From Nageia nagi (lineage: Eukaryota; Plantae; Pinophyta), in assembly GCA_050084985.1 (NCBI GenBank), contig JBITNC010000002.1, positions 434,001-498,000 on the forward strand: a stretch of 64,000 nt of DNA, written 5' to 3'. Numbering within the stretch: position 1 is the stretch's first letter; every line of letters starts with the position of its first letter. Below, piece by piece: positions 4,621 to 46,485 of the stretch. Made by a program: the position numbers and the translations under genes. Below the pieces are notes generated by a model. The model made no database searches and was not told where the DNA came from. It saw nothing but the letters and a program-made list of their open reading frames with translations.

Positions 4621-6153
4621 ACCCACGCATCTCACCCCTTGGCTAGGGTTTACAGAATCAATTTGAAGGTGAAGAAGGATGTCTCGTGTCTGAAAGTCAC
4701 CCCTTGGATAGGATAAAAATGTAAATGTAACGGAAAAATGTATTTAGTTCCAAATACATGTGGCACTCGAGAAAAAAAAAAGAATTTTTATTGTGGAAAA
4801 ATAAAAAATTCATGTAATCGTAGTTAGTTAACTGTTAGAGTAGTAAGTTGTCTTTAGGTTTAAGGAAGTTGAAAAGTCACCAAAAGTTGAGGAGACATTT
4901 TGTAACTGAAATAGAGTAGATAAAGAGTCAAGCCTTTTCATCTCCATTGAGTCTTTATAAAAGGAAGGTGAAGACATTTTTGTATCTCTCTTACTATTGC
5001 AAGAAATTGTTGTATTTTTGAAGACTGAGATTAATAAGAAGACTCGATTGCTCTTATGTTGTCATTATGTTAATGTTACTATTATGTGTATGTTTTGTTT
5101 ACCAATTTATCAATAAACTAATATTGCATATGATTGTGATATCCTTTTATAAATTTTGCAAGTGTTGCAGCAAGATTTGTAAATGATGGTGAAGATCAAT
5201 ACCAGTGAATCAATATTGATTTTGATTGTTAGATTGATATAAGAACTTTCACTCAACTGGGAACATTTTAATTGTTTTAACTTAAGTGCTTAAGTATTAC
5301 AACTAAGTTATTTTAAGCATATCTTTTTATCAGTTAATTAATAAAAAGAAACTACTTTTCAGTTGAGATTTTTTGCAAAAAATTGTTAGTTTTGAGTCAG
5401 TTGAAGAAGAAGATTGAAGCCTATTGAGGACCACCTCATAAAAAAGGAGGATTGCATAATCCCTTCTTGTCTCATTTTTCTTCTGCAAGAAAAAGTTGTT
5501 AACAAGTTTCACTTCTTTGCCTCCAACAATCGTCATAACATTCTTCAAAGCGATAATATTGAGAACTTTGAATTTCTAAATAACATATTTTTTGCCATTT
5601 AATTTATGATAACCTAGTAAAATATAACCAAAAATATTCACATTAGACCTAATGGAATCAAGGACTAGAGATTTTAGAAGACAAAACTTAAACTAAGAAA
5701 ACTACATTTGCTTTACCCTAATAAAACGTTCTAGACTAGCATTGGCAAAGGTAGTTAGGGGCTCCAAACAAAGTCCAGTAAACATCCATAGAGGTCAGAA
5801 CACACAGAGAGGAATACATTGCATCTAGTAGTCTAGTACACAACAACACAATACATGATACACAACCAGAAGTCACATAATGCATTTAGCCAAGTAAATG
5901 CATTTAAAACATGTCAATGCATGATATTTATCACATGGAGTAAAATACATGTCATGCCCTATTCAAACATGTCCACGATTTTCAACAAGAGAACATGAAC
6001 ACATCGAACAATACGAACACATCTAGAAGGAAAGAAAACACGTGTCCAAAATCTTTAGAAGGAGATGTGTTCACTAAGGGAAATATGTCTTCAATTTGAG
6101 CAAGTAAACACATAGCCTAAGGTCCACAACCTAAGCAAGGAAACGTGCTCACT

Positions 6154-24072: not shown

Positions 24073-26110
24073 GCTTAAATTAAGATTAGAGTATCATATA
24101 GCATCATATAAACAACAAAATCACCATAAACTTGAATGTCATTTAAAACATGTATGATAAATATTAAATATTCATCGTTTAAACTTCAAGTTCAATATTA
24201 AAAATATCAAGTTCAACAATGAGTTCAATGATTAATCAGCAAAGTCATCATTATCATTGACATTAGATGATGTAGGAATATTATATGAACCACAAGCAGT
24301 GCCATTGTCACTTGCACTAATAGTGTGTTCATTTTGGCTATCGAATTCATCAAATGCAATATGGTGGGAATTGGATGCATCAAAGTCAATATGCTTTGGC
24401 TCTATATCACACAACTTCATCTCCCATTGCTTATAGTCATTTTGTTTGTGTGAAAGGAGACACAAGTTGGAATGCACATATACTAAATTCTCTTCTTTTT
24501 TTTAATGCAATTTATTGTGCTTTACTAAGTGGATCAAAGAATATGTGCTTCGATTCCTCTCCAATGCAGATGAACTAGCAACCAATGAAGATAAAATATT
24601 AAATAAACAATAAAAATTATACATTATAAAAATAAATTAAAAAGTTAAAAACTATAAATGAAACTTCAAAAACTAAAAAATAAAAATTTATTAAACTTAC
24701 TTGTGATAAAACTTTGATTACGAGGGGTTGCAAGTTTCAAAAGTATTGGCCATGGAAGTACCACCAGCTATGAGCATCCTTTTTGAACCTATCACAAAGA
24801 GCCTCAATACTTTGACCATTCAAATGCACGAAATCAATGAACTCATTCATGACTATATCTCGCAATTCAATTTTAGGGAATAGTCTAACAAATGTTTCCT
24901 TGTATCCTTCAAACACTTCAAACTATCTATGTGGGGCAACCCTTTCTGGCACATAAAGAAACTCACTACTATAGTATTTTGGAGACAATGCAAAGGCAAG
25001 GAGATGTAATGGAGTACTCATTTTGTTTCATCTTTCTTCAACAATTGCATGCACTTGTTTGAAGAAAGTCTCTTGAGGGTCTATCTCTTTCGCATTTATG
25101 ATGCACTTCATCTTCTCAATCATTGAGTCGATGCCATCATATATCTTGCCAATGCAAGGCCTATCCATGTCAGTATAGTGAATCATGCACAAAATAAGCT
25201 CGATGAAACTAAGGAGATACTCTACACGATCCCACCATGAGTCATCTAATATAATCTTCTTAATTTTTGTTTCCTTTTCAATGCTGCTTTGCCTCCATAT
25301 AGACCAATTTTGGCTAATCACCATGCTAGAAAGTGCCTCTCTAACTTTCACAAATCATCTCAAGACGATTGTGAGGCAAAACAGATCTTTGCAACCTATT
25401 ACAAATTATTAAAAAAATATTAAATAAAATTAAAAACAAACTTTAATGAAGAATTAGAATATACAACCAAATTATGAAAATGTAAAATTTTATACTACTT
25501 TACTTACCTTCAATACCTCCAATTTTGAAAATGATCTAAAAATTCCTTGAGACTGTTAGGTAGTTTTTCTTTCCTACCATGTTGATAGGCAAATGATTCG
25601 CAAAGCTCACAAAGAAACCAACACCTAGGTGAAAGGGCGTTACCCCTTCCCTCTATGAGGACTGGTTACCTCAAAGGTCTCTTGGATGGATATGCAAGAA
25701 CAAGACTTAAAGATTGGCTAGGATGTTTGAGGTTGCCACCAACTCAAATAAAATTTGTTAATCAAAGACTCGAATTGTCTGGGTGCCAAGACAAGGTTTG
25801 TTTCTCAAATACTATAAATAAAAGAGGTTGGGAAAGCCGTGGAAAAAAAGTAAAAAATAAAGAAAAAGTGTAAGAGGGAAAATTGGAAATGGCTCGAACC
25901 ATATAAATTCAGCTCTTTACATCAAGCTCCACCGATGAGTACAATGTCTGAATACCAAGTTCCTCTAGGTTTGTCCTGAGTTCCATGCATCCACCTACCC
26001 TTTCATACTAGTCAACAACACAAATGGGTCTAGAAGAAGGAATATCCTCTCACACTTGCCAACAACACGAATGGTCTAGCAAAGGGAGTGTCAACTATTT
26101 TAGCACACAA

Positions 26111-27129
26111 GTAACTATAATACCAGGCCTTCCTCTTGCAATGATCTTTCATCTCGATGCACTGCTTTACTTAGTGGTAATGCAATTTAGACACTATGAC
26201 CAATGCAATAATCGTACAATGGAACAATGATATAATATTATTGATGAAAGTGAAGATACAAATACAACAAGAGTTACAATGCAATGGTAAGAAACTCTCA
26301 CCATGATGATAGCTATGGACTTGGTTATCTCGTGAGGAGCACCATCACCTGCTCAACTCAACAACAAATCAAACACAACCATTATCACAACTTCACAAGG
26401 AGAGCCTTCTTACAACAAAACTCCAACCTTCTCTTCACTTGGATAATCACGAACACAATATAACACTTGACACACTTATGAAACTAAGACTCAAGACTCA
26501 TCACACATATATAAACTTCTTTACAACTTAACAACTCACTCACAGATTCAACTCAACTTGACTTGACTCCCACTAGACTTGCTCTAGACTTTGTACTCAA
26601 CTTGTGCTCAACTTGCACTAGACTTGTGCTTAACTTGCCTTACATGCCCATAGCACTTCTCTATTTATAGGCTAGAGAAGGTATCTAGATTTCTCTACAA
26701 CTTGAATTTTAAACTACATGATATCTTCATTTCTAGAAATATCCATGAGATACCACATGGATCTTTTGCCACATAACCCTTTTCTAGAAACTCCTTTTAA
26801 ATATCAACAACTACTTCCACATCATCACATATCCTTGTGCCACATAATCCTATGGATAATTCTAGAACATATATCTTCTAGATATTACCCATGGATATTT
26901 CCTACACTTACCATTACTTACTTTCACCATTAACCTTTCACCATCTATCATTTACCATTTACCTTTACCATTTACCTTTTACCGAACTTCACTGACATAG
27001 AGCCCCCATAATACATTTGTACTACTAATCATTTTTAAGACCTTATCTCTTTATTCTGGCTACGCCGTTATCTTGCACAACAAGCTAGTTCCTAGGCACT
27101 ATTACTGATTGTGATACATATCAGTTACA
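26111..27129. mobile_element. Solo LTR nested in solo LTR A
   Basis: (T)GTAACT...AGTTACA ends; flanks CACAA/TGCAA (both derivable from CGCAA by CpG decay); segment absent from copy B. Confidence 0.55.
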
Positions 27130-27545
27130 TGCAAATACTATATATTTATTGGAAAAATTTAACGACAACAAGAGCAAACATCTAAGGGAAGTAAAGGTGT
27201 TGGTTGTATCACAGATGGCACCCTCAACATGTGGATGAAGTTTTCATGCTAAATGTCATATGAAAACACACTTCAGAATTATACAAGTCTAGTTGTATAC
27301 CACGAGCAATCACTGACTACGCATTACATTCAACACTTCAAAAGAATAATCAACCACACTTTTACCCACCTATCAACAGGTTTACAAAATGTTCCAAGCA
27401 TCTAAGTAATAGACACCAATGATAGCATTACATGCCAAAGCTCATAGTAACAAAGAAATGGAGTTGTGCAATTTAACTTAAATCTCATGCCACATTCACT
27501 ATAGACAAGTGCCAAATGGAAAGAATTACTTTACTCATCTAATTG

Positions 27546-28062
27546 CAAATGTTTATGTCCAAAATCCAAAAATTCCATCCCCTACAAATGAACCTTAAGA
27601 GCTATAAATAGTTTTTTGTGGCAACTCCAAGTGTTGCCCTAACCCTAATGCTAATTTCGAGAAAATTAAGAGTGGTCCAATGAAAATTCGACACATGGCA
27701 TTACAAGATTTATTCTAGCACTTGTGGGAAAATCTTCATCTGTCTCAAGGTTATATCAACTTTAATAAATCTTTGAAATACAAATTCGAAATAAATAAAA
27801 TTCAAAATGTTTATGTCCAAAATTCAAAAATTCCATCCCCTACAAATGAACCTTTAAGAGCTATAAGTAGTTTTTCGTGGCAACTCCAAGTGTTGCCCTA
27901 ACCTTAATGCTAATTTCGAGAAAATTAAGAGTGGTCCAATGAAAATTCGACACATGGCATTACAAGATTTATTCTAGCACTTACAGGAGATAATCTTCAT
28001 CCGTCACAAGGTTATATCAACTTTAATAAATCTTTGAAATGCAAATTCAAAATAAAATTGCA
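27546..28062 (+). repeat. Tandem duplication, 2 x ~258 bp
   Basis: AAATGTTTATGTCCAAAAT...AAATAAAATT present twice at high identity; single copy in LTR B. Confidence 0.9.
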
Positions 28063-28344
28063 ATAAATAAAATATAATAAAATTGTTGCAACTGTGACAC
28101 CACACCTCTATGCTTCTCTAGTACCAACAAATTCCATCTTCCTCGATTCTACAACATTGGAGTTGACCTCTTCACTTTTGGCACCTGCAAGGGCGATCTA
28201 GTAGCTTGCATGCATCATTGGGACAGCCTGGAATCTTGTCTTTGAAATTTAGCCATCTTGGGTGCATGCCTCTGGAAGTCAAATTTCATAGTTTTCGTAC
28301 CTCATAGCTTGGCACGGGGTTAATAAGTGTCTTATGGGTTGATG

Positions 28345-29262
28345 CATGCAAGAAAAAGATAAGATTTTGTCTTTTTCTTTCATGTGCACTACTTGAGGTT
28401 GTCAGTCATCCTAGTGCAAGCTTCTCGAGTTCCACAACTTACTCTTCCATCCTTGCGCCACCCTTCTAGCCTCAAGTTGCTCATGATTTCATCTTTTCCT
28501 GAGCCTAGATTGTCAAAATCTCATCTCGAACTCCTCCAGATCCCCTCTTAGGCTAGGCGCATACTACAAAAAGTCAAGATTTTGTTTTTTTTTTCGGTGC
28601 ACCAGCCTTCCTAGTTGCTCCAGTTTTAGCGCATGCCAAAAAAAGTCAAGATTTTGTCTTTTTTCCAGTGCACCAGCCTTCCCAGTTGCTCCAATTTGAG
28701 CGCATGCCAAAAAAAGTTAAAATTTTGTCTTTTTTTCTAGTGCACTTACCTTCTTTTGCCCAAATTAGCTTGTTTTTGGGCCTTTGGGTGCAAGACTTAA
28801 CAAAAAAACTTCCTTTTTCTTCAACCTGAGCTCCCCCTTGCCTAGGCACATGCCACAAAAAGTCAAAATTTTGTCTTCTGGGAGCATGTGCAAGCCCTCC
28901 TAGGCCCTTCTGTGCTTGATGTTGGACTTGAATGTTCATGCCTTAGCCAGTTTTCAACTTAAGCTCAACCTTTGTGCTCCTGGCTAGTTGGAGCATGCCG
29001 AAAAAAGACAAGACTTTGTCTTCTAGAGGCATGCGTTGGGTCTCTGGGAGAACCAGTTTATCCTTTTTACCCCAAAACTTCATCTTGCTCCTCTTCCTGG
29101 TTGGGCACACGCCAAAAAAAGACAAGATTTTGTCTTTTTTTCTCATACGCTTGGCCTTAAGATGTCCGAGTTTGCTTTGTTTGACCCCAATCTCGACCTT
29201 GACTTCCTCTTCCAAGTACATGCCAAAAAAAGACAAAAACTTGTCTTTTTGAGTCATGCGCT
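28345..29262. repeat. Array of about 8 palindromic repeats with variable spacers
   Basis: GCATGCCAAAAAAAG(A/T)CAAGATTTTGTCTTTTT...; the last units are about 112 bp apart. Confidence 0.85.
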
Positions 29263-30038
29263 AGGCATGTTGGAGGATCCCTTACACTTGCCCGGATCCA
29301 AACTTGACCTGGGTACCCTTCTTTCACTTAAACTCGACCATTTTTTGGAATTTCGGACTTGGACTACCATGACTAAGGGTGGGGAAGACATGATGCTCAA
29401 TTCTTGACAAGATGATAAACATGATATCCAGGTAAATGAAGTTCTAAAATAGTTGTGACATTGCTCAAGAAAGGCGTTGACGGTCCCCAAAATCGCAAGA
29501 TTTTGAGGCATGTTGTGTTAGTCACAACAAAGACATGTGATGGTTGGTGATGAACACTTGGATGTCCTCAACCTCTGCATACAGCTCTTTGATCCAATCA
29601 ATGTTATTCTCAATATTTTTTAACATAAGATTGAGTGAGTGGACCACACAAGGTGTCCAAAAGATATGTGAATATCGTTCTTCAACCAACAACCCAACAA
29701 CTCTACAATTCTTGGCATTATCTGTTATGACTTGAACAACGTTGCACAGTCCGACTTGCTCAATGGCTTCGATGAGAATATCAGCAATAAATTGTCCATC
29801 ATTTACCTACCCTCACAATCCACAGCTTTCAAAAACATTGCCCCTTTAGGGAACATAGCTATGACATTGATCAAGGGCCGAATTTTTGAATCTTTCTAAC
29901 CATCTGAAACAATAGACACACCTGTCTCAATCCAATATGGAAAGACAACCCATTTGCATAAATACACCTTACTACATGCTGGTCAGCAATGTCTCTACTC
30001 TCATTTTGAAATGCCATCTCCAAACGTACCTTTAGTCT

Positions 30039-35735: not shown

Positions 35736-38104
35736 GTACACCATTCTTTCCAAAGCAAGCTTTGATGACTTTTCCAGGTATTCCAAACAAATGGACTTTC
35801 ACCCGAAAATATGAACTAGAATATTGAACATCACATCCATTGCATTTCCAAATGTAACCCCACACACTTGGAACCGGTTCTATCATTTCAACATATTTCC
35901 ATGGAGAAATCGGATTTGTTTTGAACTTAGGTTGGCTTGTACCAGTAGAACTAGTTGCCATTGTGATTCCTATGGCAAGAAAAAACCTAGATCTTTTGAA
36001 TCTTTCATATATTAATATAAGAATGGAAAAAACATAGATAAACAAACTCAAAGGAAAGAATTTGTTTCAAGTATCAACTTCAAGATTGAAAATAAAATGA
36101 AAGAAAAAATTGAAAAAAACTTACCTCTTTGCAAAAAAATCCTTCAATGGTCTTCTTGGCAAGCAATGAACACTTGCAAATGAGTAGGAATAGCAATACA
36201 ATCCTTATAGAAGCTTCAACAATCGCTATTAAAAACCAATGCTCAGCCTTGTGGAATAAAATTTGATGTTTACAAAAGAAATGAACAAAAATGAAGTAGT
36301 TTAGAGGTTTCATGTTCTTTAAGGGTAACTTTTAGAGTTTACAAGGTGGAATTGGTCAAAGTTTAATCAAAAAAACATTAAAAAATGCAAAATATCTGCC
36401 TCTAATCGTGGTTTCTATTTGGGTGTGTCCGAGTTCCTCTCGGGCAAACCGGGCGGGAATTGGCCGAACCCTACCAAAACTTGTAGGCAGGCCGAACCAG
36501 CACCCAAACTAGGCACGAGCCGGACCCACACTGGAGCCTCCAGCCAACAAACCCGATAGCTTAGGTTTTTTATATCTCCTCTTGTAACTATTACATGATC
36601 GTAGTTACTAGATCTCTAATACTACAATTAGCTATTAATCTATATTGTCATTCCATAGGCACAATTAATTGTACATTTTTAATATATATTCTCTATTTTT
36701 TATGTCTATAGATACCAAAACTTAGGTTCGTTGTTGTTGTTAACACTAATAGTGCCAAATTTATATGGGTAGCAAATCCAATCAAAACACTCATATAACA
36801 AAAAAATATAAGACAATAGACATGAATACCCAAAATAGATAGTAAAATGTACTAAATGCCAATATGAGAGTAGCAATGAAACATAAACAATTCACAATGC
36901 AATGCAGTATCGACAAATAATAGACAAATATGAATATATTACGTAAAACAAACTCTAGATAACATAACTAATATGAAATGATGGCAAGTTTAAAATAACA
37001 ATGTTGTAACCACCTCAAAGGTCTAACCTCCAATACGTAATCAACGACTAAGAAGGATGTTATGCATGATCCATACATCATCTACACCACTACTTCACCT
37101 TTTATTCATAGACACAAGCAATAACTAATAACTACTACTAATGCTCAACTATTGACTACCCAAGATAATCTCACCTAGACCCTATTCCATAGAAGTATGC
37201 TAGTGTATCACATAAGCATTTGGACTCTATCATAAGATTCATAACCATCTAGAATAGCATATATGATCATCCTCAATGTAGTAATTTAGCAAAGGAGGAA
37301 AGGAAATCAAAATTTTAATGATGATATAAGTTTGTATTACTTTGCTATGGAACGAAATGTAGCTTTTCCACCTAAATAGAATTCCTAAATCAATTCTCAA
37401 GACTAGCAGTGATGTATTACAAAATACTATAAAAATTTTGTAAAATATTTAAATAAATCACTGGCAACTTCCTTCAACAATCACAAAGAAAAAAAATTAC
37501 AAGATAACAAGATAAGAATTTCATAGTAACTAAAAACTTTCCATTGAGATGAAAAACTTACAGATTCTCAAAGTTTGGTTCAAGACTAGTTTCAAGGCAT
37601 TCCACCTATCATCAATTGAACTGTTTTTGAGAAAAAGTTACATGTTGAAATTCTTAAATAGGCAAAAGGTAACCCTAGAGGCAAGCATACAACTCCTTAG
37701 GATTAAAAATTCATTAAAATAATTTCTAAAATATAGAAATTAAGATTTAATTTCTACATAAGAAACTATAGGTAAAATTTTATGAGGGGTAATTTCAAAC
37801 AAAAAGAGAAATCTAAGCTTCTCAAACTCCCTAAAAGGTTGCTCCATAAAAACAAAGATCCATCTTAATCTTAAAAAAAGCTCCTCAATAAAGTCTGCTT
37901 CTAAATAAAAAGCTCCTTGCTCTTAATCTCTGAAAGAAGAAACTCCTTAGTCGAATAAAACTGGCCTTATCAGATTCTCTGAGAAGGTATCATTTAAGCT
38001 CAGACAAAATAAAAGACTTCTTTTGATGCAAAGGATGCCACGATCAAAGTGGGAAGTATTAAAAATGTTCGTTGGCTTCTTAAAGCAACGAGTGGAGAGG
38101 GTAT

Positions 38105-40478
38105 TGTTGGGGGCTTTTTCTTTCCTCCCCTTGTCAATTGGTAAATTGTATCACAAGGCTTGTAGAAAGACTCCAACACCTGAGTGGTAGGGCATGACCC
38201 CTACCCGCTATGAGGACTGTTTGCCCCAAAGGTTTGAAAGTGAAGGGTGCAAGGGTTCACTCAAGTGATATGGTAGAGATGTTTGAAGCTATTACCAACT
38301 CAAATGAAATTTGTTAATCAACAACTCGAAGGGTCCCTAATCCAGGCATAGTTGTTTCTCAAAGAAAAGGAAAAAGGTTTGTTGTGAAAGTCGTGTAAAG
38401 AAAATAGAAAATAAAAAAAGGGTTGTGAAAAGACGGTGATATATGAATTCAGCTCTAGGGCAATGTTCTCACTGACTAGTATGACCTTCTAAGACCGAAC
38501 TTGTGCTGGTTTGACATAGGTTCCACACACCCCAAATCCAACTCGACAGGCGACAACACGGACATCCCAACGAGAGGAGCTTGGCACTAAGGCAATGGAT
38601 AAGAAATGTATCGTATGGGTAGAACTCAATTGTGGAGTGAAGTTCCTATATTAAACGGCATACACAAGTCATCTTAGAACACACTAATCCCATGTGCAAA
38701 CTATGAAACTTTACAATCAAGCACTTCTTGAAATATTTCAAAGGATGTACAAGCATTCTTTTATCCACCAACAAGGTTTATAAAATGTCCCAAATACTCA
38801 AGATAGCATAAAAATGTAACATTCATTCACTTTCATAGTCCCAAATCAAAACAAGCTCACTTCAATTTCTTGGAATTGTATCACAATTGCGAAAAGGGAA
38901 AACTTGCAAAATTGAAAGTATTATGTAAGTGGTCCCAAATGCAAAAATGTTTGATCCCCTACAAATGATCCCAAATGGGCTATAAATAGTTTTTCCTGGC
39001 AACTCAAAGTGTTGTCCTAACCCTAATTGCAATTTCCAAGAAATAGAATATGGTCCAATCACAAATCGCCACATGGCGTTACAAGGTTTCTTCCAAACTT
39101 GTGGAAGCAAATCCTCATTCATCACAAGTTTAGGAATTAAATAATAATATAATAAAGCATTTTAGACAAAAATAGATATCATTTTCTTGGAAATAAAATA
39201 AACTGGAAAATTGTGACAAAGCTACCAATGGGCCCAAGCCCACAACACGTTCCTCAAATTCCTCATCTAGGAATTTTGTAGCATGAGAAAAGTTCCATCC
39301 TGGCCATCCATGTGTTTGTCCTCGAGATGTGCGCCTACTTGAAATTGCATACCTTGTTGGTCAAGACCAGACGTGGGGGTTCTGGGGCTCCTTCTGGCTT
39401 AGCGCATGGCTAGAAAAGACAAGATTTTGTCTTTTTGGATCATGCGGCAACCTTGGGGGTGAGTATGCTTCCCACATTGGCCATCCTTGCTCTCTTGCTT
39501 GCTCATCTTGACCCTGAACCTCATCTTGTGACTTGATCTTTCCTGATTTTTGGTCTTTCTAGTGCCTAGGCTTGTCAAATTTCATCTTTCATCTCAACCT
39601 GGGCACTCCCCAAGCCTAACGCATGGCTCAAAAAGTCAATTTTGACTTTTTGAACCATGCGACAACCTCTCCTGCTCTTCTAGCTTGGTTGCATGGTTCA
39701 AAAAGACAAGATTTTGTCTTTTTGAGGCATGCGCTAGCCTCCCTGATGCTTTTTGACTTTTGAAGCATGCGACAACCTCTCCTGCTCTTCTAGCTTGGTT
39801 GCATGGTTCAAAAAGACAAGATTTTGTCTTTTTGAGGCATGCGCTAGCCTCCCTTATGCTTGGGGTTCACTTCCTAATCCTCGAACTTGCCCAGTTACTC
39901 CTCCCAACTTGGTCACATGATTCAAAAAGACAAGATTTTATCTTTTGAAATCATGCGACAAACTTGTTGTGCTTTGTTCTTGTCTTTTCTCTGCTTTGTT
40001 TCGATCCAGACTGCTCCCTGACCTGGTCGCATGATTCAAAAAGACAAGATTTTGTCTTTTTGAGGCATGCACCAAGCCTCAAAGTGACCCAGATTGCTTT
40101 TCTAGGAATTAACTTCAGTCTAGACGACTCCCTAACCCAATCACATGTTTCAAAAAGACAAGATTTTGTCTTTTGAAATCATGCACCAGCCCTAGGAGTG
40201 GCCCAATTTGACTTGACTTTGTCCCGACTCATCCTGGACTTCCCTGGTTCACCTAAGATTGACTTTTGGTTTTCCAGACATAGCCATTTTTTGGAAATTT
40301 AGGATTTTGGCTCAACATGACTAAGACTAGGCAATTGATTAGACTTAGGCTTGGGACAACTTGACATAATATCCAAGCTCTTATTGAAGGAGACAAAAAC
40401 ATGACCCTATCTGTAGACGAGTTAGTGAGGGTCCCCAAAATCGTAGGATTTTGGGGCACGTTGTGTTTAGTCACAACA
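38105..40478. mobile_element. Solo LTR (hairpin-array family, copy B)
   Basis: TGTTGG...CACAACA; decayed TSD GGTAT/AGTAC (ancestral GGTAC restores the PLE frame I-G-T-L); homologous to 25554-29529. Confidence 0.85.
39402..40185. repeat. Array of about 7 palindromic ~44-bp repeats with variable spacers, period about 110-114 bp
   Basis: GCATG(G/A)TTCAAAAAGACAAGATTTTGTCTTTTTGA(G/A)NCATGC repeated. Confidence 0.9.
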
Positions 40479-40899
40479 AGTACCAATATGCCTAAAGTCA
40501 CCACCTTCAAAGAAAGTGATATCCAAAATGTCAACAGAGGAGTCTTAAACACAAGGAGTGATTCAGATTTCAGGATAGAAATTTTGGTAATGGTCGAAGA
40601 ATTGTTGCAAAGACTCCTACGAACCTGCCAAAATGCCAAAAGCATCATCTATATATCTTTTGAAAAACAAGAGCGGGGACAAGTCAACCACGTCTGCGAG
40701 TTGTTTTTCAAGATGACAAAGGAAAATGCAGGCATAGACAACCGTAAAATTACTTCCCATAGCCATGCCTCGGATTTGATGGTAAAAAGAACCATTAAAA
40801 TCCAAATAATGCTCAAAAAGCATAAATTCTGCTAAATTCATAATCAGTTCCATAATCCCTAGGTCAAGTTTATTGACAATGAGGAAATTCTGCTAAACT

Positions 40900-41960
40900 T
40901 GTTTATGATTGGATTTGTTGCAAAAACTTGTTTATGATGATCAACAAATTGGAAGAAACATCAAATTTCTTTGAGAATCAAACATTATCGCCTAATAAAA
41001 CATGTATTGGGTTAGAATTAATTTAAGGCCGAAGCCTTTGAAAAACTCCTTAGTGTCTTTGTCCCCAAATACAACTAGTGCAATTGTGCTTGAACTTGAG
41101 CTCGTCAAGCTTCATAATATTCTACAGTTGAAGTTTATGCTTAGTAAGAGCCATTTCTTACTATATAAGTTCACTAAAAGGATTTATATCTAGCTCTTGG
41201 GAGAGTTTAGCATGCTCTCGAGTCAAGGCCAAATTAGACCATTTTCAAAATTTGAACAAAGCACCATATGATTGCAAAAAATGGTAATTCTTTGAATGGC
41301 CTCCTCCCACCAAGAAATCCACTCTTCCTCTCAAACAAGTGGAGAAATTAGGTTCAAACTCATTGAATAATAGTAGGGTATACCAGAAAAAAAGAAGTAT
41401 TCATAATAAACTTAGACCTAGAAGATCATGGGGAATTAGGCTCCCATAGAGTTTCAAACCGGATGGCAATATGATCAAGAAAAAAATTGAGAACAACTGG
41501 AAAAGGTAATTGAGGATCAAAATGCAATGGGGATAGCTAGAAAGCATAGCTCTATCAAGTCTCTTTTGTAATCTTCCAACTCCCTATCGAAAATTTGACC
41601 ACATGTGCCAAATAGCAAAGTTGCATTGATATTTTGCATTTGAGGAATTAGAGTCAAAATGGCCAAGGGCTTGCTTGAAAAAAAGCTATGCCTTCCTCTC
41701 CCCTATACACCAATTTTGAGGAATACATTTAATCTTATCATTAGAGTATTCCACAATGTTGAAATCACATAGAAGGTTTCTTGCTAACCATCTCCAACAA
41801 TATTCTCCAGCAACATTGGGAATAAACATTAAACAACTCTAGGTAATGGTTATCGAATCAAAAAGGGTCCTTATAACATTGTTAGCTTGAGTAACTCCCA
41901 CGGAGATAAGTCTATTTTACCATGCAAAGGTGAAGAAGTTAAGACCACCACCTTTCTGTA
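40900..41960 (-). mobile_element. Heavily decayed L1/Tx1-type LINE fragment (endonuclease to linker)
   Basis: Minus-strand QKRLDRAML, LDH and GDKDTKEFFK motifs. Confidence 0.6.
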
Positions 41961-43720: not shown

Positions 43721-44306
43721 ACAAGTTAATACTCATTGCTCACCTGTATTGTGTGTGTGTCTAACTACACCGACAAGATAGATGTGCTTAAGGCCCATAA
43801 CCAATAAAATAAAATTAGTTTAATACAGTTCACATTAATTCTGAGATATGCCTTGACAAATCAGTCAAAGATCAACAGGAAGCACTAATGACTGCTAAAG
43901 AGACAATTTACGAACAAATAAACAGCACTGTTCAACAGTCTTGAATAAAAAACACATCCATTCATCTTTAAAATTGATCTTATGGTTCATTTGATGGGGA
44001 TGGTAACTCAGCAGATCAGCTCCCATGGTTCCAGACCACAATGTCAAAGGTTCAAATATGTAAACAATGGGAACTATGTTGCAACATCAATATCATGTTC
44101 AGAGGTCAACTGGTGGACAAACACGATACACGTTTTGGAGTTCCATTCTTGGTAATAGTGGGTATTTTAGATGTGCAAAGCAACACTAGAACTACTCAAA
44201 AACCATGCCCATTCTTACAGAAGAATTTCAGATCATCAATATTGAAATAAAAAAAGAAAAGCAAATTTGATAGGCATAAAAATACGGAAAGAATATTTGT
44301 TCTGAC

Positions 44307-45590
44307 CTGAGGCCATCTGCCACCACCATGGGACACAAACTCTGCACGAGGAAGTTGCTGAGCTATGAGATCTCCTTCTCTCTGCCAATCCTTGGACCAC
44401 TGACTTCCCCACACTATTTGGACAGGCACTTCTTTCATCTCATTAGAATTTGCCCAAGCCTGAGGATCAAAGCTAGAATTTGCCCGACCTGCAATCTCCA
44501 CAATAGCCCTAGCACCACTCTTAGTCCTCCAGAGAAACCCGTGGGCCTCTGCTGCATTCACATCGATGTTCTTTGAACAACACATTTTAAGTAGGCCAAG
44601 TTGAAAGAAGGTCAAACGGGTCACCAAATCCCTGACTCCCGGAACCTTCAGAATCCAAAGGGGCAAAGATGGACGATGTGGGGTAGCATCGATGAGAGTT
44701 ACGCTGCGAACTAGTGATGGATTGTTGGCAGCCCAAATAGCACCAGACTCGAACCCAGAATCATGCACAACCAAATGAACTGGCCCAAGAGCTAAGGATT
44801 CAATTACCTGCCCCAAACTCTCGGCCAATTCCTCTGCCCCACAGTCAAGTACTTGGTAGCTTTTCCTAACTCTAGGTTCAAGCGCAACATGAGGAAGCTC
44901 CCCTGTTTCAATGAGATGATCAAATCCCCAAAACAAGCCCTTCTCTCTGATTTCAAGATACACATCCCTTATCCTCCCAACAAAACCGGGCCATCTCCTC
45001 TCATTCCCCAAGGCAATTTTTTCCGAAAACCCAGAACCAGGCAAGTCCGGTGCAACAGCTCTTATTCCCCTTGAAGCCAACATTGATATAACATGCCGGA
45101 AAGCAAAAGAACTTCCCCCAAAACCATGAAGCAGAACTACGGTTTCAGCATTATCCCTGGGACCTTCTTCTCTCACAAACAATTGGATAGAATTCCTTTC
45201 TTCCCCAATCTGGACTTTGATCATTTTTCCCTTGTTGTAATGTGAACGCAAGTCTTGGGGCATGCTTAGGAACTCTGCTTTCTCGTCTTCTGGATTGATA
45301 AGAGAAGAAGCTATCACGAAGGCCAAAGTAACTACAGAAACCATGCCCAGAAAAAGTGCCCAGAAAATAAAGACATTTGGAGCAGATTTTTCATCTCCTG
45401 CTGTGGGGTTTTTGCTGATATCAGAATTTAAATTACGTTCATTCCTTAAATGCTTTCGGTTTCTAAGTCCCTGTTCTTTGCTTTCTGATTCTTTGTGGGT
45501 ATTTAGAATCGTCTGACTCTCTTCTTGTTCATGTTGTTTCTGTGGAGAGTGAGGTTGAATCTCAGTTATTCCACTGTTGTTGTCCTCCAT
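44307..45590 (-). CDS. AXR4: AUXIN RESISTANT 4-like ER membrane alpha/beta-hydrolase-fold protein, exon 1 (428 codons)
   Basis: Intact ORF with an N-terminal TM helix, then FLSMPQDLRSHY..G..IKVQ, ETVVLLHGFGGSSFAF, DLPGSGFS, EKGLFWGFDHLIETGELP, PVHLVVHDS, GGRWPQ, collinear with Arabidopsis AXR4 as recalled. First in-frame ATG is 45590 (45599 is GTG). Phase-0 donor CAG|GTCAGA at 44307/44306; the ORF-track tail after WPQ is intron read-through. Confidence 0.93.
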
Positions 45591-46485
45591 GTTTTCCACT
45601 CTGCTATTCCCTGGTACAGCTATAAGAAAAACCCATCGTCTGCCAAATATGATAGTTTTGTGAAGCCTCGTATGATACTTTTGTAAAGCCTATATGGCAG
45701 TTTCATATGTTCTGCTCAGGATATCTGACATGGCTAACTGGATTCCATCATTCCTAGCATTTGGAGCTCATGGACTTTGTTTTCTACACCAGTCTGAGTG
45801 CTCTCTTTTCGTTAAGGTCGATTTCTGTTAATGTGACGATTGTTGAGGCATGCACCGGATTACTTCTGAATTTGGCTTTCTTCCGTTGAATTAAAACTAA
45901 GTATATGTATTTTTATTTTTGTTAAAAATAATCATTTAAATATATACAAAATATATATTTATTTTTGGATAAATTTTGATAGATCTTATAAATTATTAGA
46001 TTTAAAAGATGATAAAAGATATCATTCATTCATCCAATAGTAATTTAATTGAAAAACATGATTAATTTTATAATGAATATTAGAAATTAATATTTTATAA
46101 ATTAGATATCAAAATTATATATATTGAGTATGGAGTTTGATTTGGTTAAGATTTAAGTCTTGTTCACTCTTATTTTTAACTAGTCAATTAATCAATATGT
46201 TATTCTAATTGGTATGTCGGTCATTCAATCGGTATGTCGATTAGGTCTTGATGGCAGTGGAGGCGTTACATGCATTATGATGGTAATCGAGCTTGATGTA
46301 GTCAATCCCTATTTCGGCAACCGATCTTATGCATGTCGGTTAGATAACAAAGAGATTAAACTCCAAGTTCAGAAGTCAAAATCATGTCTCATCAAGCCTT
46401 AATTTCATAGTTGGGGGTTACAATCATGGTAGAACATTACCCCACAAATTCTTTGACCATTTTTGGGTTAAATTGGGATGGTAGC

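Follow-up and report, generated by a model that had tools for sequence, protein, structure and literature searches.

A decayed endonuclease-less Penelope-like element in the Nageia nagi genome, probably of the Coprina type

Which lineage of Penelope-like elements (PLEs) left the remnant that lies in a 64,000-nucleotide stretch of the Nageia nagi genome, and is that lineage new to gymnosperms? The stretch, called the window throughout, covers positions 434,001 to 498,000 of contig JBITNC010000002.1 (assembly GCA_050084985.1). Translation of its minus strand reveals two collinear stretches of PLE reverse transcriptase (RT) at 37.7–40.9 kb. The first-pass annotation had proposed a second gymnosperm PLE lineage at this site, Naiad/Chlamys- or Neptune-like and not Dryad-like, hidden by the insertion of a solo long terminal repeat (LTR). 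We find that the locus is a real, long-dead, 5'-truncated PLE copy, split by a later insertion. It is very probably a fossil of an endonuclease-less (EN–) PLE lineage of plants, Coprina-type by its features, and such elements are already on record for conifers.

The reverse-transcriptase remnant

About 200 of the roughly 600 RT residues remain, spanning RT4 to the thumb (minus strand, 40479–40904 and 37909–38102). A profile hidden Markov model (HMM) was built from 15 close relatives and run on all six frames of the window. Its matches were confined to two stretches, one at 40479–40880 and the other at 37909–38067, which belong to the following features.

40479–40904, minus strand: PLE RT core, from just after RT3 to RT7 (family HMM positions 310–444, E-value (E) 3.5e-53; also found by tblastn)
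37909–38102, minus strand: RT thumb region (family HMM positions 456–508, E 2.1e-19)

Only 11 model positions are missing between the two stretches, and these coincide with the insertion. Direct reading of the right stretch gives the core motifs QIRGMAMGSNF (RT4), RYIDD (RT5) and ILDITFFEG. On the minus strand, the piece at 40620–40892 translates as ...YHQIRGMAMGSNFTVVYACIFLCHLEKQ...FFKRYIDDAFGILAGS, and the piece at 40481–40618 continues this reading to ...VDILDITFFEGGDFRHIGT. On the far side of the insertion, 38067–38102 translates as TLSTRCFKKPTN, a small piece containing KKPTN that aligns to residues 465–482 of the Cryptomeria protein P0170, the place expected for it. The remainder of the left stretch, 37909–38067, translates as HF*YFPL*SWHPLHQKKSFILSELK*YLLRESDKASFIRLRSFFFQRLRARSF. 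Thumb motifs recognized across 37909–38102 are CFKKPTN, SWHPLHQKKSFILSEL and FIRLRSFFFQRLRAR, and they include SWHP..HQKKSFI.SEL and RLRAR. The locus therefore carries RT4 and RT5 of the PLE type (Q..G.AMGS, RY[IV]DD) followed by a thumb of the PLE type (KP.N.Y..(F/P).S.HP...K).

Decay of the copy is evident in both stretches. Six stops are present in total, three in frame within 40479–40892 and three within 37909–38067. A frameshift lies near 38067 in the left stretch, and none is seen in the right stretch (40479–40904). Pfam searches of the stop-free pieces of the window were blank, because these pieces are too short and too diverged. The PLE motifs named by the first-pass annotation, its closing 'PIVSY' excepted, like the stops and frameshifts (at least one of the latter) that it described, are thus borne out by translation and by the HMM.

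The limits of the copy are set by the features below.

40895–40938, no strand assigned: tandem duplication of 29 bp at the 5' limit of recognizable homology (repeat search; AAACTTGTTTATGAT at 29-bp spacing)
37743–37908, minus strand: presumed decayed C-terminal tail of the open reading frame (ORF), 'PIVSY', without an endonuclease domain (judged from where the relatives' ORFs end)

Upstream of about 40905 the HMM, run with --max, found no family match, and the copy is therefore 5'-truncated. A vestige of RT3 considered near 40942 (CFFQFVDHH) was dropped, as it was unseen by the profile and its spacing was a misfit. At the other end, the 'PIVSY' motif with which the first-pass annotation closed the RT could not be upheld: 37743–37922 has no significant similarity to the relatives (E 80), and reading it as part of the ORF would need a second frameshift near 37915. 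A candidate 3' telomere tag at 37683, AACCCTAGA, was rejected for its wrong orientation. The flanks of the PLE copy are unique within the window.

Relatives and phylogenetic placement

A word search with a 91-aa piece of the copy, limited by a length band, returned a single match, a fragment of Ginkgo Gb_23740 (62% identity). An exhaustive profile search matched 7594 proteins, GIY-YIG-bearing PLEs among them. The best full-length matches measure 555–660 aa and include Ginkgo Gb_11119, the Logan protein P0003 (604 aa) and Selaginella XP_024523476 (580 aa). P0003 matches the window pieces at 59% identity in the RT core and at 66% in the thumb. By tblastn the RT core is 59–61% identical to P0003 and to Cryptomeria P0170/P0171; Cryptomeria japonica LOC131042973 reaches 61% identity to the window pieces, and Gb_11119 53% over the RT core. 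When P0003 itself served as the query, the word search brought in a number of 'uncharacterized proteins' of Cryptomeria japonica (at about 63% identity to P0003) as well as Closterium proteins of about 1000 aa.

None of the relatives examined shows any sign of an endonuclease, the closest full-length ones being ORFs of 580–660 aa. Pfam detected a GIY-YIG domain in 0 of 20 relatives, and EN+ control PLEs in the same set have one. An endonuclease HMM built here detected 22 EN+ controls and no member of the clade to which the window copy belongs. In hit-list PLEs outside that clade, GIY-YIG was C-terminal in every case. The relatives' ORFs end 63–98 residues past RARGY. These data uphold the first-pass view of a lineage lacking a C-terminal GIY-YIG. 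In the window copy nothing of a C-terminal endonuclease is visible, the C-terminal side being the only one that can be judged in a truncated copy.

The N-terminal part of the relatives is equally plain. The N-termini of P0003 and P0170 and the Closterium region preceding GLKFIP have no CxC motif, and an N-terminal GIY-YIG is absent from the full-length relatives. Full-length relatives start at the N1/GxKF motif with zero cysteines upstream of GxKF/Y, and hence have no CxC. The distance from RT3(A) to RT4(B) is 54–60 aa in the clade, compared to 53–60 aa in canonical EN+ PLEs, and it follows that the relatives have no IFD, which would add 20–40 residues. The DKN motif (D175 K176 N177) is invariant in the family alignment (A2), in a region absent from the window copy, and ADKN occurs in 98 of 131 EN– rows. 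Intact members encode a single RT protein some 600 aa long (N1/GxKF, DKN, RT1–7 and thumb) without GIY-YIG, and a coiled-coil ORF or extension often precedes it.

Phylogenetic analysis placed the copy among these proteins. FastTree was run on 145 rows and a quick IQ-TREE search on 66 rows, the trees covering 601 and 586 columns. The larger window piece fell in a clade of Ginkgo and Cryptomeria (99 and 98), nested with Selaginella (99) and then within a wider clade with Closterium. A careful IQ-TREE run used LG+C20+F+G4 on 41 rows and the 215 columns covered by the fragment, in which each window piece had a row of its own. Both pieces independently joined a nine-row clade of Ginkgo and Cryptomeria (UFBoot 97, SH-aLRT 90). 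This clade lies within a 17-row clade with Selaginella XP_024523476 (100/98), itself within a 22-row clade with Closterium (91/88). Seven PLEs with a C-terminal endonuclease stand across a 97/81 branch from the window pieces. An approximately unbiased (AU) test, with the pieces again as separate rows, rejected a single clade of the window pieces and EN+ PLEs (difference in log-likelihood 67.5, p 0.0005), the EN+ rows being metagenomic or Logan PLEs and not verified Dryads.

Judged from its sequence, the window copy belongs to the EN– plant lineage of Selaginella, Ginkgo and conifers, and the earlier statement that it is not Dryad- or Poseidon-like holds. We have high confidence, on the strength of features and literature, that this lineage is of the Coprina type.

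Hammerheads, telomere repeats and the choice between readings

A metagenome scan yielded 65 loci encoding relatives, at 36–53% identity. Of these loci, 32 contain a hammerhead core, CTGANGAGCTC-loop-GAGCGAAAC, which in 31 of them lies on the sense strand. It lies 0.3–1.3 kb 3' of the RT ORF in 22 loci and upstream of it in nine, the latter position fitting terminal repeats or copies in tandem. Helix I covaries among subfamilies; helix III consists of no more than a minimal palindromic CTAG or CATG. Rfam scored two of these hammerheads as HH9, below threshold (E 1.8e-4, 32.5 bits versus a gathering threshold of 52), and the fold of the L010 hammerhead has a z-score of –4.2. The 32 hammerhead-bearing loci run from L002 to L054; the L010 ribozyme, for example, occupies 5826–5884. 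Sense-strand (CCCTAAA)n follows the ORF on its 3' side in L010, L011, L033 and L051 and reaches the contig end in L033 and L051. The kin are linked to telomere repeats, not to 28S ribosomal DNA (rDNA). A hammerhead together with 3' C-rich telomere repeats, in elements without an endonuclease, matches published descriptions of EN– PLEs that attach to telomeres.

A large ORF1 (652–928 aa) was also noted just upstream of the RT ORF in metagenomic kin (for example 20–2806 in L010 and 2067–4025 in L007). This ORF, present in many loci, is blank in Pfam and coiled-coil-like; in part it is similar to the extension at the N-terminus of the Ginkgo model Gb_11119. No vestige of this ORF1 was found in the window.

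A possible trace of the ribozyme does occur at the window locus.

37563–37635, minus strand: candidate mutated hammerhead relic (covariance-model match, pattern match)

A covariance model made from the relatives' hammerheads gave a weak match here on the sense strand (E 0.24 window-wide, rank 2). The candidate reads GTTCAA / tTGATGA / AGGT-loop-GCCT / tGAAAC / TAG / tc / TTGAAC. Its helix I is perfect over 6 bp, its helix II has 4 bp, and it shares the relatives' GAAACTAGT box, with core C3 changed to U. It is also the sole match in 64 kb to the pattern TGATGA-N8-22-GAAACNNG, for which 0.21 matches are expected, and its position, on the sense strand and 3' of what is left of the ORF, is the one expected for a ribozyme.

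Several observations weigh against these readings and need to be set out together. With the N-terminal two thirds of the ORF gone, the absence of endonuclease, CxC and IFD holds for the relatives and not for this copy. The trees had no reference rows for Coprina, Athena, Naiad, Chlamys or authentic Dryads, and hence the clade names rest on features and literature. No telomere-type repeat adjoins the 3' side of the window copy. As for the candidate ribozyme, Rfam found no hammerhead in the window either at the gathering threshold or at E ≤ 10, and an E of 0.24 is not significant window-wide. The candidate folds into helices I and II with an energy no better than that of shuffled sequences, and it sits only about 85 nt past the expected stop, compared to 0.3–1.3 kb in the relatives. 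On balance we lean towards reading 37563–37635 as a hammerhead relic. That a decayed internal copy lacks a telomere repeat has no bearing on lineage.

Table 1 of a review (PMC9033089) has entries, taken from Lin et al. 2016, for EN(–) PLEs in Selaginella, Pinus taeda and Picea abies, and the same review gives both EN(+) Dryads and EN(–) PLEs as found in conifer genomes. The premise that conifers hold only Dryads was accordingly incomplete; the second gymnosperm lineage proposed for this locus is real, but it is not new. The window copy is a further member of the known EN– PLE lineage of plants and as such an ordinary find. Elements of this kind reportedly occupy Selaginella telomeres, a finding of Gladyshev and Arkhipova from 2007 known through later citations. 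The locus resembles the plant EN(–) PLEs (Sm1 and Sm2 of Selaginella moellendorffii; those of Pinus taeda and Picea abies) in its RT and thumb, its lack of an endonuclease, its plant host, its DKN-bearing relatives, its well-supported grouping with Selaginella proteins, and its kin with a 3' hammerhead and C-rich telomere repeats. Unlike them, it is internal, 5'-truncated, decayed and free of telomere repeats, and its gymnosperm host seems to be a different one. The likeness is one of description, and identity with the families of Lin 2016 or Gladyshev 2007 is not claimed.

The name Coprina draws on further comparisons. DKN is named as a conserved motif of a Coprina element, and Sm1 and Sm2 of Selaginella are entered as Coprina in Repbase (PMC13159263). 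The fungal Coprina elements (Coprina-1_Alen, Cc1 and Pc1) share with the lineage the missing endonuclease, DKN, RT1–7, the thumb and a coiled-coil N-terminal part or ORF. They likewise sit between telomere repeats, but the plant members use (CCCTAAA)n; this comparison is one of features, with no fungal row in the trees. The label 'Neptune-like' in the first-pass annotation is loosely compatible with this assignment, in that Craig et al. 2021 place Coprina with Neptune, at weak support.

Three other identities have to be weighed against a Coprina-type EN– element. The first-pass annotation named Naiad/Chlamys as one of two affinities; in a weaker form, membership there would mean PLE-X, a subgroup without an endonuclease described from Selaginella, Chara and perhaps mosses by Craig et al. 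2021. PLE-X families of Chlamys are indeed plant elements that lack an endonuclease and carry canonical hammerheads, as the kin of the window copy do. The RT tree, having no Naiad/Chlamys reference rows, gives no direct exclusion, and the N-terminal part that would be most telling is gone from the copy. The features described for PLE-X, however, are CxC, IFD, an N-terminal extension behind an intron and a 28S rDNA target, and none of these was seen in the relatives. The closest full-length proteins start at N1/GxKF with no upstream cysteine, no CxC and no N-terminal GIY-YIG; their RT3–RT4 spacing leaves no room for an IFD; they have DKN invariantly, not DKA or DK; and the hammerhead-bearing kin are tied to telomere repeats. 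These data argue against the Naiad/Chlamys affinity, which we regard as very unlikely.

An Athena-type EN– PLE, belonging to the two-ORF, Terminon-like clade of rotifers, is a little less probable again. A language-model look-alike search did place rotifer clusters nearest, a method giving neither alignment nor E-value, and the upstream ORF1 of the metagenomic relatives recalls the two ORFs said to be typical of Athena and not of Coprina. Against this, Athena is described as rotifer-specific, the Selaginella EN– elements Sm1 and Sm2 are filed with Coprina, and the relatives from Cryptomeria and Logan each consist of one ORF, about 600 aa long. We consider it least probable of all, indeed scarcely credible, that the copy is a Dryad (Penelope/Poseidon-type, with C-terminal GIY-YIG) whose endonuclease was lost by decay or deletion. 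Dryads are the best-known PLEs of conifers, the window copy is likewise a PLE RT in a gymnosperm genome, and the region 3' of its thumb is too decayed to read. However, Dryads possess GIY-YIG at the C-terminal end, and their RTs are arthropod-like. The copy is about 60% identical to EN-less relatives, and both of its pieces lie on the EN-less side of the split from EN+ PLEs. The AU test rejects grouping them with its EN+ rows (none a verified Dryad), and the closest full-length proteins stop shortly after RARGY without GIY-YIG.

The insertion, the neighbouring gene and a proposed history

The two RT stretches are separated by an insertion whose features are as follows.

38105–40478, no strand assigned: 2374-bp insertion with TGTTG...CAACA termini, probable solo LTR (direct reading, repeat search, relative at 25554–29529)
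38100–38104, no strand assigned: left copy of a 5-bp target-site duplication, GGTAT (direct reading; right copy AGTAC at 40479–40483)

The two copies of the duplication agree at three of five bases, and the remaining two differ by transitions. A count of bases shows that the reading frame is kept once the insertion and 5 bp are removed, and the RT is thereby rejoined as the first-pass annotation had described. A second, longer copy of the TG..CA element lies at 25554–29529. It is diverged (about 70–77%) and has the same TGTT...CACAACA termini, with flanks GAGAC/AAGAC. No primer-binding site was found behind this copy, and hence the solo-LTR reading, also made in the first pass, is reasonable. 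The two are probably solo LTRs of one family.

The inserted LTR holds tandem units of 110–114 bp with palindromes. Six such units occupy 39390–40185, each with a palindrome of about 44 bp (GCATG..AAAAAGACAAGATTTTGTCTTTTT..CATGC). In Rfam these units gave sub-threshold look-alikes of plant microRNA precursors only, as expected for hairpins.

An intact, intronless ORF of 467 aa lies at 44196–45599 on the minus strand. It has an alpha/beta-hydrolase fold and is a homologue of AUXIN RESPONSE 4 (AXR4). Among the named matches, Taxus chinensis comes first at 71% identity, followed by Araucaria (70%) and Ginkgo (66%), and angiosperm proteins do not exceed 50%. These values point to a gymnosperm host without close representation among named proteins. 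The ORF could be the host AXR4 gene or a retrocopy.

The history of the PLE copy may be pictured as follows. By analogy with Athena and Coprina, EN– PLEs would be copied through target-primed reverse transcription, with a free DNA 3'-OH as the starting point. The typical primer would be the telomeric G-overhang, pairing with telomere-complement C-rich repeats at the RNA's 3' end, beside the hammerhead. The window copy would have been truncated at its 5' end, as is usual for target-primed reverse transcription, leaving about one third of the ORF, plus the putative ribozyme relic, at an internal, transposon-rich site. Later, the copy would have received an LTR retrotransposon, which then collapsed to a solo LTR. 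Subsequent decay by stops and frameshifts would have produced the copy seen now, which is presumably inert.

In the trees, Closterium is followed by Selaginella, by sequences that may be moss- or fern-like, and then by Ginkgo and conifers. One scenario, which we offer tentatively and hold to be possible but somewhat doubtful, is that the EN– PLE lineage was inherited vertically through streptophytes and lost in angiosperms, and that it spread internally without an endonuclease in the giant genomes of gymnosperms, perhaps at breaks or interstitial telomere tracts.

As a dead copy, the locus carries little weight alone and is a modest data point. It does correct the premise that conifer PLEs are Dryads only. 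The EN– lineage appears ancient among green plants, in contrast to the Dryads with their horizontal origin, and its copies lie at internal chromosomal sites as well. If the proposed internal spread is true, gymnosperm genomes would be a place to study endonuclease-independent retrotransposition.

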